Assembly (NCBI GenBank): GCA_964057225.1 | Contig: OZ059899.1 | Location: forward strand, 12,276,001-12,340,000 | DNA from: Auanema rhodensis | Lineage: Eukaryota; Animalia; Nematoda | Direction of reading: 5' to 3' | DNA length: 64,000 nucleotides | Shown here: positions 44,301-56,300 of the stretch, piece by piece | How positions within the stretch are numbered: the stretch's first letter is position 1 | Layout of the letters: every line of letters starts with the position of its first letter | Made by a program: the position numbers and the translations under genes | The notes under the pieces: model-generated | The model's database searches: none | What the model was told of the DNA's origin: nothing | What the model saw: the letters and a program-made list of their open reading frames with translations, nothing else

Positions 44301-47300
44301 TCTCTTCATACCATAGGCTGTTTCTTCTGGTCCCCGAAGACTTGTGCTTGAAGCCCTGCCGTTTAGGCATTACCCAAAGCCACTTTGAAGCCCTCGATAT
44401 GCTGAAGATGATGATAATGTCGCAATGCTTCTCTATAGAACGTTTAATCTTCTCATTTCTTGAATTGTAGTCCTTTGAGTATTATATATAATCCTTTGGT
44501 TACCCAAAAATCTTTTTCCCCTATCTCACTTATTTTCCTTCTCTTATTTTATCTTTTTTCACTAACTCTTCTCTCTTTTCTCATTCATACATCTGAACTA
44601 CCTCTTCTCTCTCATTTTCTACTGTTTTATCTTTTCTCTTTCTTTCAAATACAGCCGCTTTGCGTGTGTATGTAATCGAGGGAAGCCAACCATCCTGTCC
44701 TACTAACCAGCAATAGGTGAACAGTGGATGCCTCGTTGAACCTTTATTGTATACGCACCACTGAATTAAAAACTGGCATACACCAGCAATCTTTTCCACC
44801 AGCATATTTGGAATAACTAGCTACTTACTAAAAAGCCCATCCTTTTCCTATTGTGCTAGTCATTCATCATATTGTGATCTTTATGAGTCCTGTCGGACTT
44901 CTACTAAGTCGCTATGCCAGCTACGACACATTAATTTTAATTTTTCAGCGGAAGAGATCTTCTTCCCAAAGAATATGGAAAAGATAAGGAAAATGAGAAA
45001 ACAATCGTCAGAGTAAGTTTTTATTTAAACTTATTTCTATTAATATAATAATCTAGAATTACAAAGAGTTGGTTGGAACCTCCGAATTGGAGGCCAAGAG
45101 CCGTTACGTGAGGTTATGCCGTGGTTTGAAAACCTATGGCGTTACTTTCTTTGTTGTCAGAGGTGAGTCCACATTTACAAATTCCTAGTATATTCGTTCA
45201 AAATTCGTGCAATTTATTATTTATTTCAGACAAGGTTCGAGGAAAGAACAAGCTTATTCCACGACTTCTTGGAGTGAATAAGGAATGTGTGATGTTGGTC
45301 GATGAAAAGACGAAGGATGTATTGAAAGAATGGCCCCTTGAACAAGTGAGAAGAACAGCTTGCTCACCTAAAACCTTCTCTATGGTTTGATTGACATTAT
45401 AATATTTTTGCAAAATATAAGTGTAGGATTTTGGTGATTATCAAGATCAATACTACTGTGTACAAACACCCGACGGAGAGAAGATCAAGCAGCTCATTGC
45501 TGGCTACATTGATATAATTTTACTCAAGAAGCGTACCGTTGATCACCTGGGTATTGAAGGAGATGAAGGTTCCACCATGTTGGAAGATGTTGTTGCACCA
45601 GCCAAAGCAACTTTGGTTAGTATTTACTTACCAGTTGTATTTATTTCGAGGCGGATTATCTGCTTGAAATTGTTCGAAAATTTCAACTTCTTATTCACAG
45701 GTTTCTCACGGACAAATTGGAAGTGGACAGCATGCTCAAGATGGACATGTTGCTCTTCGTGGGGTCCTTCGTACCCCACAAAGCGGGTATGGATATGGAA
45801 TCAACGGTGCTCAGTATGGAGCCGTTAGCGGTGAAGTTCAAGGAGGATCTGTTCAAAGAGTAAGTTTATGATTGAATACAAGAGTGTTTCTGCAAGCGAG
45901 CAACTCGGTCCCTAGTAACTCAGCATTAGAATTACACTCGATTTTACTACTCTCTCTCTCTGTCTTTCTCCTCCCGCTGTGTCATGCCCTGTCGTGCGTC
46001 CGGTTCCTTCTCCTATTGCCGGATTAAAAGAGGCCAACAGCGCTTGGTCTCTGGTTCAAGAGCTCTCTGACTAGAGAGGTGGCCGCTATTTGGATTCGAG
46101 GCTTGATGTCCTATTATAGGAAACAAGCTGAGCGCCATAAGAGACTAGGAGAAAGATGGAGTGAGTAGGGCTGATGACAGAGGGCAATGGCAGATGTCTC
46201 CGCCGGCTGCTGAATGAGTTATTATTGTTACCGAGGCAACGCTTTCATAGTCTTTGTCTACATTTTTGAATGTCTATCCTTGGTTAAAAACCCTTCATAA
46301 GGCTTGCTCTGTTTTCTCATCATTCCTTTTGAATAAAGAGTAGTATCGAATGAAAATATGATGGTGACTCTCGCGATCGTAGTATTCTTAGTAATGGTTA
46401 GGAGAAGTCTAGCTGCAACTTTTAGTAGTAGTAAGCATAAGGAATACTAGTGTCAGAGAAAAGCGAGAAAAAGCTAAGGAAGGAAACGGAAAGAGATAGA
46501 GGCAGACAGGATGAGAATAGAATTAAACTCGATGAGAATGAAAATGCCCGGAGGAAGATGAACTCCTGGAAATATTCTGTCACATCTTGTTCTCTGTGTC
46601 ATCAGTTACATTTAGGCTCAGCGTACTCGTATCATCGATACCTATGAACAACCACAACGTGCTCTTATTGGAACTATTGAAGCAACCATCCGTGCAGTTG
46701 ACGAGGCGGAAGAGGAATTGAAAAAAGAACCTCAAATTGATATCCCTCGGTTCCACGATGATCTCAATGCCAGAAGGTTAGGAGGACTTCTAAAAACAAC
46801 TAATTTCTTATTACTTAAGATGGATCGATGAGCAAGTTGCCGTTAATAAGGAGAGTGTAAATGAGCGTCTTGCTGCTATGGGTGCTGCTACTGCTCAAGT
46901 TGTACAATGGACCGCCGTACAAGAAGAGTACGATGAACGCGTTGGCTCTGCAATTGCAACTATTGGCTCCAACCTTCCTGATGTTGGTAGAAATGTTCGT
47001 GATTTGGCTGCTCTTATGGAAGAACGTAAAGGGTATATTTTGTTAAGACTTACCATTTCTCATTAGAAACAATTTCAGAGGAGACCTTCTTGAAGCTACT
47101 CGCAAATTATGTGGTGCTTTCGGTGATTTCCTCACCGCTGTCAACCCCGAACAGCAGGTAAATATATGAATCATTTGTATTATTTTATATTCACAAATAC
47201 ATTATTTTTCCGTCAACATTATTCTTTCGTTTTAGGAACGTCGTACAACTGTCCTAGCAGCTGCTGGACGCGTTGGTGACTTTTCTCAAACCGTCATCAA

Positions 47301-50300
47301 TACTATGGATGAACAGACTTATGAGGAACAGACATTCCAAGACAACCTTGTTCAGAAAGCTAAAAATGTTGCTACTAGCACTGCTAATCTAGTCCTACAG
47401 TACGTTGTTTTATTTTTCTTGATTGTAGTCTAAACTCAGTTGTTGAAGTCCTAAAATTGGCCTTGTGTATATCCTTCTGTTTTTAAAAGACAAAGCTGTA
47501 AAGCTTCGTGCTGTTACCGAAAATAGGCATATATGTCCTATGGGAGCTAGTTGTAGATTTAGTAAAGCTTCTGACCCTTGATGGATGCTATGTAAATGCG
47601 GTTGAAGTCGAGAGCAGTGTCTCTAGGGAAAGTAGGAGAAAGGGGTTCAAAGTTAGGGAAATGGAAATAGACAGCATAAGAAATAGGGGATTTAAAGAGA
47701 GGACCCGAGGGCAGATAGAGAATGGGGTATACATGCCACGCTTTAGAGAGCACGAGGCAAATAAGAGATACGAGCCGGGAGCGCTGAGATACAATAGGCT
47801 TACTAGAGGCTGAATGGACATCTGGTCATGCATCTCGTGGGCCTTCAATCGTCCGGGCCACACGTCTCTTGAGGCCATCCATTCAGTTCGATCGGCCTTG
47901 AGATTGTGCCAGCACCAAGGCATCCGTCTCCATCTCTGCCCTCTCTTGCACATGAAGCTGCTCTCCGCTTCTCTGATGTCTCTCTCCCTCCCCCATCTGT
48001 CCAGTTGCCCCTTTTCCCTCCATCGTCTCTAGAAGCCGCGGCAGCAGCTCAGTCCTGGGCGGTTAGCTCCTCCTCTACCCTCAGTGGGCGGTCCTCCATA
48101 TATAGTCATTCGAAGGCTGTGCCTCCAGCCTCCTATTCGTCCAAGCTGTTGGCTAGCTGACTGGCTGCTGCGCTTGGGACTGCACAACTGCTTGCTCACT
48201 TTCTCGTTTACGCGGCAGTCCTATAGTGTCTAGCCAACTCAGTATTATTTATTAAATGTTTTTATTTTTATAATATTTAATATTTAATAATGTTCACATG
48301 CTTTCTTTCGTATTGAAGTTTGTACTTCAAAGAACAATTCTTATCGCATTTATATGCTAAGTCTGAGAGCTATCCTATTGATTTATATTTCTCTTTATAT
48401 GGCTATGAAAGTTTTTTTCTTTTCTATCACCCTGATGAATATCCGCGCGCAACCAGATAGCCGGTTCTTAGTGAAGCGGCCATCACTGACTCCTTTAGTG
48501 GTACCTCCATCATAGGGTGGTTGTCGGCTTTTCTCTTTATCCCTTTTCGAAGAAAATGGAGAAGTGCTTGATAGTCATTCAGTCAGACCACCGTCAGCCA
48601 AGCCAGCCTGCAGATCCTCTGGGTCTTGCGTCTATCTCTTCCGTTGCTGGAGCAGAGTTTGAGCAGTTCAAGATTAGATCCGTACACTGGTCTACTGCTT
48701 GCTCTAATTATATGAAACGCTTGTAATTGACTCGCTATTCTACCATTGCCGTCCGTTCCTTAGCTTGTTAGCCGACCATTATTCTACATCTACGACTCAC
48801 AAACGCACTCCGGAGTTCTACTGAACTTGATCTTGCTGAAACTTAGAAATAGATTAGCTAAGCTCTATAGCAAACTAATCTATAGGAATCAAGATCATGT
48901 TTCCTAGACGACGAAAAGTAGTGACAGATATTCAGATATTCAACTACTATGGCAGCACGCCAGCACTTAGTGCCACTCCGCCGCCACCGACTCGTCGATT
49001 TTCGCCATTGCCGCCTCTGAATCTCACAATTCCGAAGAGGTACCTGCCTTAGATTGTAAGAGATAAAGGAGAATATGAGAGTGCGACATTAGCGAAACAC
49101 TACTGGATGTGAAGTAGAGTGAGTGAAGCGGAGAGCGAGGGAGCTAGAGAACACTATGAAAGAGACGAGGCAGTTGAAATAGGACAAGGAGCACGCCTAA
49201 CTTGGCCTGCTCCCATCTTTATGACGTCATCAAGCGTACTGCCTTGATATATTCTTTTGTCTGCGCTCGGTGATCCGTCTATCCGATTGTCTTTTCACTA
49301 GCCAGCTAGTCATGACCATTGTTCCATTTTCGATTTTTAACACATCAATGAGAAATAGAAAGAGGGCGTGGTTGCGCAACTATTCCTGGCTTTTAGTGAA
49401 AAGATGGAGCTAAACATGTTTCTATCAAATCAGAGATTAGAGTGATATTGAATCTTCTCTCGTTACTTATCTTGCCTGAATTTACTAATATGCTCTCCGA
49501 ACTGCATACTATTCTTATTTCAATTTATTTCCTTTTTTCCAGAGCCAAGACTATCTCTGCAGATTGTGAAGATCATGATCTCCGTGATAATGTCATCCAT
49601 AGTGCCACTCAATGTGCTTTTGCCACATCTCAACTTGTGGCTTGCGCCCGTGTTGTCGCTCCAACTATCGAAAGCAATGCATGTCAAGATCAGCTAACCA
49701 GTGCTGTAAAACAGGTATGTATAATTCTTTATACTTTGGTTCGAAAGCGAGGGAACTATTGGTCGATTTCAAAAATTTTGAATGTATTTTATGAAAACGA
49801 AATTGTCCTCTGATCGTTCACAGTTAGTTCTATGACTTTGCCGTTTTGTCTTTGTGAATGAGTGCGAGATGAAAAAGTACAGTAGTTTGGCGCTAGTTGC
49901 GATATTTGAAATGCAATGAGTTTGAATTCATTTAGGTTTCTCACACTGTCGATGAACTTTTGCATGATGCGGAAATTGCTTGTACAAGAACAAGAGGAAA
50001 TGGTGAACAAGCTTATGGAGATATCCATCAAGCTGCCCGTCAGGTTACTCAAGCTCTGGACAGTCTTTTGGATCATGTAAAGACTAGTCCTAAAATTACC
50101 AAAACTACTGAGGAAGAACAATACAATGCTGTTCTTCGAACCACTAATAGACTTCTTGCCCACCAGGTAACGATTGATATTATTATTTTTTATTTCTCAT
50201 GTCTCATATTCAGGGACCTAGTGAAGATCTCACTCGTGAAGCTAAGAAAGTCATTCGTCACAGTAAGATTTTGATGGAACAGTTCGAGCATGAGGCTCAT

Positions 50301-53300: not shown

Positions 53301-56300
53301 CGTGGCCAAACAGCTGCTATCGAAACTTCTCGTGTGCAAAGAAATTGCCAACAGGTTCGTCAGATCTGCCAAAGAATCGAAACCCAGGAATACAATCAAG
53401 AGCAAATTTTGGATGTAAGTTTGTATTACCTCCACACTTTAAGTTATTGTTTTTGTTTTCAGGATGCTACCGTGGTTGCTAAGCACACCTCTATGCTGGC
53501 AAACATGTGCCGTGAGGCTTCGGAGAGATCTACTAATGTGAATGTTAAGAAACATTTCATCAATAGTGCTCGTAACATCGCTAGCTACACCGCCAACTTG
53601 ATTACTGCTGTTCGAGATTTTGATGGCAAGAAGTCGCCTGAAACCCGTTCTACCTGTGCTTCTTCCGCATCCATGCTCTCGGAGGCTGTTGATCAACTTG
53701 AGAGATATGTGGACAATCCCGATTTTAATGCTGTTCCAGCTAAGATCAGTCACCCAGGAAGAGATGCTCAGATTCCCGTGCTCGCTTCAAGTCGTCAAAT
53801 GCTTGATGCCAGTTGCGAGATGATTAAGACAGCTAAGGATCTCTCTGTTGCTCCTCGTGACAGTGTAGTTTGGCAACGACTTGCTGACAACAGTAAAGAC
53901 GTTTCTGAATCTATCAAACGCCTTGTTTCGGCAATCAGAGATGCTGCTCCTGGACAAGCTGAAATGGATCGTGTTATTCAACAACTAGAACAACTTATTG
54001 TTGATATCGAGCGTAGTGCTTTAGAATCTATAGGATCGCCTTCCAGTTCGGTTTCTACAGGCGCTGAAAAACGTATTCATCAACAAATTCTTCATGCGAC
54101 CCAGAGTTTGTCCGAAAAAGTCGATACTTTAAGAACCGCTGCCATCAGTAAAGGAGAAGATTTGGCTCATTGTGTTGAAGAACATTGGCAGTTGACTCAG
54201 CCTTTGGCTGCAAGTGCTTGTGATGCTGCCGCTATTGCTGTTGACTCTCACCTCCAAGCTGAGTTGTTCGATAAATGCCGCACTGTGGTTGAAGCTGAGC
54301 TTCAAATGATGTATGCGTGCCGCGATTCTGGAGGAAATCCAAAGGCTGTTGAACACCATTCTCGTGTTGACGATTCTGCTGCCCAACTTCGAGATGCTTT
54401 GGCTGACATGCGATCTACAGTTCAGAAAGTTAGTTCCGATCAAGGAGTAATTCAAGGAATGATTGAAACCATCTCTCATTCGATCGCTAGCGCTGATCAA
54501 GCTAGAGCTCCTTCCCAAGGAAGCTTCGCTGATTTCCAGACCAAGATGACTCAATGTTTGGCGGACATTAGAAGAACTGCTTCAGATATGCCAATGGCAG
54601 AGCCACAAGCACTTGGAAGCTTAGCTCTTAATCTTTCTGAGCGTTATCGTGCCCTTGCCATCGAGTCCAACCAAGCCGTCGGCCTGTTATCCGCCGCCAA
54701 CCTTGCTCTCAAGCTTAAAGTTGCTGTCCAAAAATTGGGCACAGCATGCATTGAGGATGTGAAGATCGCAGGACAAAGACGCAGTCATCCATCAGATCAA
54801 AAGATTCAGCATGAATTAAACAGACAGTCTCAAGTTGTGATTGAGCGAGTAGATGAAGTTCTCGCAGCTCTTCATGAAGGATCAAAGGGAACACAAGCAT
54901 GCATTAATGCTGCTAATACTGTATCTGGAATTATCGGCGACCTTGACACCACAATATTATTCGCCACTAGTGGAAGCTTAAATCCAGCTGGAGAGCATAA
55001 AGATTTCAATGCTCACAGGGAAGCAATTCTAACTACTGCCCGCGCTCTTGTCGAAGATACTAAAGCGCTAGTTGCTGGAGCTGCCTCAAACCAAGAACAA
55101 CTTGCTGTTGCTGCTCAAAATGCAGTCAGAACCATCGTCAATCTTTCGGATGCGGTTAAGAATGGAGCCGTTTGCTTGTCCAGTGACAATGCTGAAGCTC
55201 AAGTTCTTGTCATTCATGCTGTTCGCGATGTTGCATCTGCCCTTTCCGCTCTCATTCAAGCCACGAAAAATGCTTCTGGAAGATCCCTTCAAGACCCTGC
55301 CATGGGTAATTTGAAAGAAGCAGCAAAAGTGATGGTTACTAACGTAACAAGCTTGTTAAAGACTGTGAAAAGCGTTGAAGACAAACAGCAGCAGGGTACT
55401 AGAGCCCTCGAGGCGGCTATTGAGAGCATTGGACAAGAGATCAAGCATTATGACCACGAAACGGCTGATGGTGCCCCAGGACCATCTGGCGCAACCCCAG
55501 AACACTTGGCTAGAGCCACGCAGAAGGTCACTGATGCTACCACAAGACTAGCTAGGGCTGCTCAATCACTGCAGCAATCGGACATCATAGCTGCGGCCAA
55601 TTTTGCCCGAGCGGCTGTCAGTGAGCTACTCATTGTTGCCCGAGCTGCCGCAGCAGACGCTGACTCCCCAGAAGCTCGCTATAGAACTTTAGACTCCGGA
55701 CGAGAAGTTGCAACTCAGGTTAGCTTTTCAAAGTTTAAAGTAAAAATAACATTTATATATTTAGGTTAGAGGACTGCTGGCTTCACTACACAATGTGCTT
55801 ACTCGTAACTCAGATCCTGCAGCCCGTCAACTGCTGCTGGATGCTTCTCGCGGAGTTGCACAGGCTGTCCGCGATCTCATCGGCTGTACGGAACTACTGA
55901 CTGGAGACAATTGGACTAATCAGACCGACCCTACTGTTGTAGCTGAGAATGAGTTGATGGGAGCCGCTAGTTCCATCGATGCTGCTGCCATTAAACTTGC
56001 TGAGCTGCGACCTCGAGTTGAACCTAAGGTTTGTTTTACATTTCTGGTTGTTTTAAATTTTTATATTCTAAATGAAAATAACTCTAACTTTGTTATGAGT
56101 TCCCTGCCCACACAAGGCCAGGTGAACTTTGATATGTCTGGTATTCTTGGGTTCGATAAGCAACCAGATTATTAGACATATCGAAGATCGCTGTGGCGCT
56201 AAGCATTGTCCAAAACTCAGCTATTTCTAGCAATCATGCGCTTGCTGGACAATATTTAAGTCAATTTGCGTGTCTCATTGTCCAAATCGTCCTAATCCTT

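Follow-up and report, generated by a model that had tools for sequence, protein, structure and literature searches.

Does the intron that splits the R2 coding sequence of this talin gene contain an exon of its own, and if so, is that exon inserted into the talin message as a cassette or does it begin a shorter protein? Talin is the central force-bearing link between integrin and actin, and its isoforms alter cellular force sensing. A sequence-only reading of the window (the whole 64,000-nucleotide stretch of DNA analysed here) had proposed a 132-nt cassette exon at 48908–49039, packed with signalling motifs, or alternatively a first exon beginning at an in-frame ATG just upstream. The layout behind both proposals was confirmed: the 132-nt segment is preceded by tttcctag and followed by gtacct, both of its ends are in phase 2, it is free of stops in that frame and its translation is the peptide given for it, and both the in-frame ATG at 48897 and a ctatag ending at 48885 are present. 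The features are collected in Table 1.

Table 1. Features of the R2 intron and its flanking talin exons, in window coordinates.
Feature	Position	Strand	Remarks
Constitutive talin exon (end of R1 and R2 helix 1)	47236..47399	+	Ends with 2 bases of a codon; donor gtacgt at 47400
Host intron, phase 2, 2143 nt	47400..49542	+	Between CA/gtacgt and ttccag/A
CNE1, conserved block near the 5' end of the intron	47527..47600	+	In all three species (L001:4820-4928; L015:2120-2231)
ctatag, possible trans-splice/leader acceptor	48880..48885	+	11 nt before the ATG; seen in the sequence, role putative
In-frame ATG, proposed start of a short isoform	48897..48899	+	In-frame stop 21 nt upstream; A at -3
Conserved coding core, 17 residues including the AGA codon	48906..48956	+	Peptide match to A. 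duodenale and H. polygyrus introns
Proline-rich linker, lineage-specific, with SH3, PKA and MAPK-like patterns	48957..49039	+	Not conserved
gtacct, sole donor in phase 2 from the ATG to the stop at 49050	49040..49045	+	Seen in the sequence
Next constitutive talin exon (rest of R2), proposed splice partner	49543..49716	+	Talin-1 residues 686-739, E = 1e-12

The two exons that flank the intron align end to end with talin-1 residues 633–684 and 686–739, which places their junction at 684/685, in R2. The upstream exon shares 81% protein identity with its counterpart in A. duodenale (L001:4517-4678). Across talin exons the window is 81–88% identical at the protein level to the two strongylids used for comparison, A. 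duodenale and H. polygyrus, versus ~96% between the two strongylids themselves. An open, phase-compatible frame is a weak exon signal in this intron, because stop-free, phase-compatible AG..GT segments of 60–400 nt occur there 51 times, and 16 of these are at least 132 nt long. Taken alone, such a frame says little; it was conservation that singled out the real part of the segment.

When the peptide was looked for in other nematodes, the first 16 codons of the segment were found to recur in the orthologous talin introns of A. duodenale (L001:5515-5565) and H. polygyrus (L015:7418-7465), in the latter as MRRKVFKEIYIYNYYG; the 16-residue stretch itself was placed at L001:5518-5565 and L015:7421-7465. 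The window peptide scored 70 against the A. duodenale intron, where dinucleotide shuffles gave a mean of 15.6 and a maximum of 29 (z = 14.4), and 53 against the H. polygyrus intron (z = 9.6 above dinucleotide shuffles). Over 15 codons of the core, the differences between the three pairs of species fall at first, second and third codon positions as 2/3/11, 2/2/11 and 2/3/8, giving third-position shares of 11/16, 11/15 and 8/13 (p = 0.004, 0.002 and 0.035, respectively). Each pair shows 7 synonymous codon changes, with dN at ~0.2 and dS saturated, and one core serine switches from AGC to TCT. Frame-breaking indels had been named by the sequence-only reading as evidence that would count against the exon; the indels seen are multiples of three. 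In the three species compared, the core carries the signature of translated sequence under purifying selection.

The core motif has one copy per locus and, of the loci examined, is present in these three only. The remainder of the introns is almost unalignable, with blastn and tblastx giving only two other small islands, both non-coding. The orthologous intron is ~2.16 kb long in A. duodenale and >8 kb in H. polygyrus, where the 10 kb examined do not reach back to the upstream talin exon. At three other nematode loci it measures 140–540 bp and holds no trace of the peptide, and given these short-intron loci, the exon may be confined to strongylid-like species with long introns. The comparison comprises three species: the H. 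polygyrus contig (L015) was taken from the same protein cluster as the A. duodenale contig (L001) model, and an S. vulgaris contig and three short Logan contigs carrying the H. polygyrus ORF stop short of the exon.

The sequence upstream of the core bears directly on how it could be used. In A. duodenale and H. polygyrus an ATG stands immediately before RRKV. The former has an in-frame TGA 15 nt upstream of this ATG and no AG between the two, and the latter has no AG within 60 nt upstream. With no usable acceptor, and with the TGA in A. duodenale, the peptide is readable only from its own ATG, so that a cassette exon is impossible in both relatives. The relatives' ATG aligns with the AGA codon at 48906–48908, 9 nt downstream of the window's ATG, and there is a purine at -3 of the ATG in all three species. 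It is the change from ATG to AGA that created the cctAG acceptor, and tttcctAG/A followed by an open frame is accordingly a feature of the window only. The motif-packed cassette of the sequence-only reading is thus not supported, the relatives having no acceptor and the motif-bearing half being lineage-specific, whereas its alternative, a first exon starting at the ATG at 48897 and leading to a headless talin, agrees well with the comparison between species. The basic cluster resembling a monopartite NLS at the N-terminus is RRRK in the window and only RRK, after the methionine, in the relatives.

At the other end of the exon, both relatives have a phase-2 donor (AG/GTT) exactly 68 nt after the ATG, in the phase required by the next talin exon, and it is at this donor that their conservation stops. 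The window has CGT CGA TTT (48993–49001) aligned with the relatives' CGT AG/G TT, the ancestral donor having been lost. Its present donor, gtacct, has no G at +5; the known donors of the talin gene vary (gtacgt and gtatgt, for example). The linker that results is 28 residues long in the window versus 6 residues after NYYG in the relatives, and it is proline-rich in all three species. The signalling motifs claimed for the segment are present as patterns (PxxPxR, RRxS and RRx..LxL), but all of them lie in the unconserved half and have no counterpart in the two relatives.

From these comparisons we consider it rather probable that the conserved element is an alternative first exon, specifying a talin from which the head, R1 and most of R2 helix 1 are missing. 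Either the transcript would begin within the R2 intron, or trans-splicing would add a leader immediately ahead of the ATG, with the ctatag ending at 48885 as a candidate acceptor. Translation would start at 48897, and a predicted splice would run in frame from the donor at 49040 to the talin exon at 49543. The resulting protein would have no FERM head, no R1 and hardly any of R2 helix 1, and its N-terminus would consist of a conserved leader of ~16 residues, RRKV-x2-D/E-I-x-I/V-F/Y-NYYG, followed by the variable proline-rich linker. In the window lineage, the ancestral ATG became AGA and the ancestral donor was lost; their replacements, both in frame, are an ATG lying 9 nt upstream and a donor lying 75 nt downstream. 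At the level of sequence, coding constraint, a start codon and an in-phase donor were each demonstrated in three species.

Other explanations of the same data were weighed against this first exon. The ATG-led peptide might belong to a separate small gene that is not joined to talin, whether as a micro-protein or as exon 1 of a nested gene, and the free-standing ORFs of 51, 63 and 97 codons in the three species would suit such a gene. We regard it as unlikely, however, as the tails of these ORFs are unrelated and unequal in length, the intron holds no other conserved coding block, no relative was found in Pfam, PDB or the databases, and the conservation ends at a donor whose phase matches that of the talin exon that follows, in all three species. 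That the window species, for its part, uses the segment as a cassette or as a hybrid first and internal exon (47399 to 48908 and 49039 to 49543, adding 44 residues close to where R2 helix 1 ends) seems improbable to us. What is impossible in both relatives would have to be new here, the in-frame ATG kept 9 nt upstream would be left unexplained, the intron offers 50 further open AG..GT segments that fit the phase, and one of the helices of a four-helix bundle would be broken by the insert. Nevertheless, tttcctAG/A is acceptable as an acceptor, TAG acceptors stand at ~4 of ~9 conserved exon starts of the gene (approximate figures, read from alignment edges), the ATG-to-AGA change did create the site, and length and phase fit.

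The exon could also be real in other strongylids and decaying in the window lineage, its present ATG and donor being accidental. The ancestral ATG is indeed AGA and the ancestral AG/GT is CG/AT in the window, and 23 further open codons with an in-phase GT are, by a rough estimate, not improbable by chance. Decay is nonetheless quite improbable, given that the 16 codons are intact and have changed mainly synonymously, that the indels are multiples of three, and that an in-frame ATG within 3 codons has a chance of ~5%, again roughly estimated. Least credible, and in our judgement very unlikely, is a conserved non-coding element (an enhancer or a splicing element) with a coding look, or a chance match. 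The same intron does contain two conserved blocks that are clearly non-coding, but the third-position bias is significant in every pair of species, one serine changes from AGC to TCT, the ATG and donor are retained, and the scores lie far above those of the shuffles. No repeat family or transposon accounts for segment 48908–49039.

A predicted protein that already contains the proposed first exon is present in the public record. The ORF surrounding the talin exon that follows, used as a query, led to the partial A. duodenale model ANCDUO_12936 (KIH56879.1), which starts MRRKVYTDIRVYNYYGS, continues for 6 residues and then passes directly into the exon homologous to 49543 onwards. This is an automated partial prediction on a split talin gene, named 'hypothetical protein', and it exists because the predictor split the A. 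duodenale talin in two. The same exon is thus already joined to the next talin exon there, although the model has not been interpreted as an isoform. The annotation of H. polygyrus is without the exon. A protein search with the window's 51-residue ORF gave no match, and residues 1–40 of the A. duodenale model matched KIH56879.1 itself only. A profile of two ORFs run against 1.84 billion representatives gave one match, to the unconserved A. duodenale tail, and is irrelevant here. Across two large databases the peptide was thus found in no protein other than KIH56879.1. Searches of Pfam and PDB with the peptide gave no match, and scans of metagenome contigs with degenerate DNA patterns gave 0 hits. 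As far as we found, the exon and its leader peptide are undescribed apart from this uninterpreted model.

The AlphaFold model of the A. duodenale protein has a mean pLDDT of 53.8, with the leader at ~33 and unstructured, and in this low-confidence model the first helix begins ~10 residues after the junction. Such a start would agree with a junction close to where R2 helix 1 ends, but the model is too poor to carry a structural conclusion. A rod-only talin cannot activate integrin via the head (F3) and would keep the vinculin, actin and second integrin sites of the rod, and an R2 that lacks helix 1 would probably be open. It is a tentative and somewhat doubtful extension of the first-exon reading that strongylid-like parasitic nematodes make a rod-only talin from an internal start in the R2 intron, in which the 16-residue leader would be a new targeting or interaction module and R2, being without helix 1, would be constitutively open for vinculin. 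Such a talin would be mechanically pre-activated, and neither Caenorhabditis nor vertebrates would have a counterpart. If the exon is real, several parasitic nematodes gain a talin with an opened R2 and without the integrin-activating head, and this headless form could act as a competitor or modulator of the full-length protein in muscle or other tissues. Gene models would then be corrected as well, since the A. duodenale talin is split at the exon and that of H. polygyrus is without it.

Of the talin isoforms known elsewhere, one precedent is mouse testis talin 2 (Ts-talin 2), which has alternative 5' exons inside an intron, one of them with an in-frame ATG (Debrand et al. 2009, PMC2702505). 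The talin encoded there lacks the FERM head and gains a short novel N-terminus, as would the product proposed here. Ts-talin 2, however, starts much further along the rod and is without its N-terminal half, its exons and leader are unrelated, and its proof came from RACE and from northern and western blots, whereas the window exon is known from comparative sequence. Among nematodes, C. elegans TLN-1 has 7 annotated isoforms, and the tagged N-terminus is found only in isoforms a and b (WormBase, as cited in PMC11642917). A muscle-specific short talin form of C. elegans arises via an alternative 3' exon (PMC6581053). The sequence-only reading had also suggested an analogue of human TLN1 exon 17b (Gallego-Paez et al. 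2023, PMC9997659), a cassette of 51 nt whose insertion point in the first R2 helix follows Gln665. Both are small unannotated exons affecting the first R2 helix, but the analogy is not supported: Gln665 lies ~20 residues before the 684/685 junction, the peptides are unrelated, and the exon of the relatives cannot be a cassette.

The two non-coding islands differ in how well the window retains them. CNE1 is 90% identical between A. duodenale and H. polygyrus over 112 nt, above the identity of their exons. Its core is TGATGGATGCTATGYAAATG, and the two relatives carry the octamer ATGCAAAT. There is a stop in the only frame that is shared, and CNE1 gave no Rfam match and no significant fold. Neither a structured RNA nor mir-50 holds as an identity for it, mir-50 being located elsewhere in the window. 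CNE1 may serve the internal start as an enhancer or promoter element. The other island is a 34-nt block (L001:5449-5482; L015:7306-7339), 94% identical between the two relatives and 33–78 nt upstream of the conserved ATG, with a small palindrome (TTCTGT..ACAGAA) and a weak window counterpart only, near 48805–48835. Its frame relation to the ATG differs between A. duodenale and H. polygyrus. Lying upstream of the ATG, the conserved non-coding blocks give a hint of regulation.

Several minor features of the introns were also noted. A 19-nt inverted repeat in the window (48817–48835 and 48890–48908), which is 79% complementary and may be due to chance, could bring about pairing between sequence 55 nt upstream and the region holding the ATG at 48897 and the cctag acceptor. 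The body of the window intron at 47600–48230 has a high GC content (up to 0.6), its strand changes near 47800 from purine-rich to pyrimidine-rich, and it contains long stop-free frames in several phases; this body is not conserved in A. duodenale or H. polygyrus. The H. polygyrus intron holds a near-perfect inverted repeat (L015:1850-1975; atgtggcctacatgg ... ccatgtaggccacat) that resembles a small foldback or MITE insertion.

Further along the gene, a downstream talin intron contains the mir-50 precursor in sense orientation (56123–56191, + strand; Rfam RF00824, 67.5 bits). We take its mature sequence to be identical to cel-miR-50, and the Rfam match backs this independently. The location of mir-50/mir-190 within talin is a known and deeply conserved arrangement (PMC3282659).
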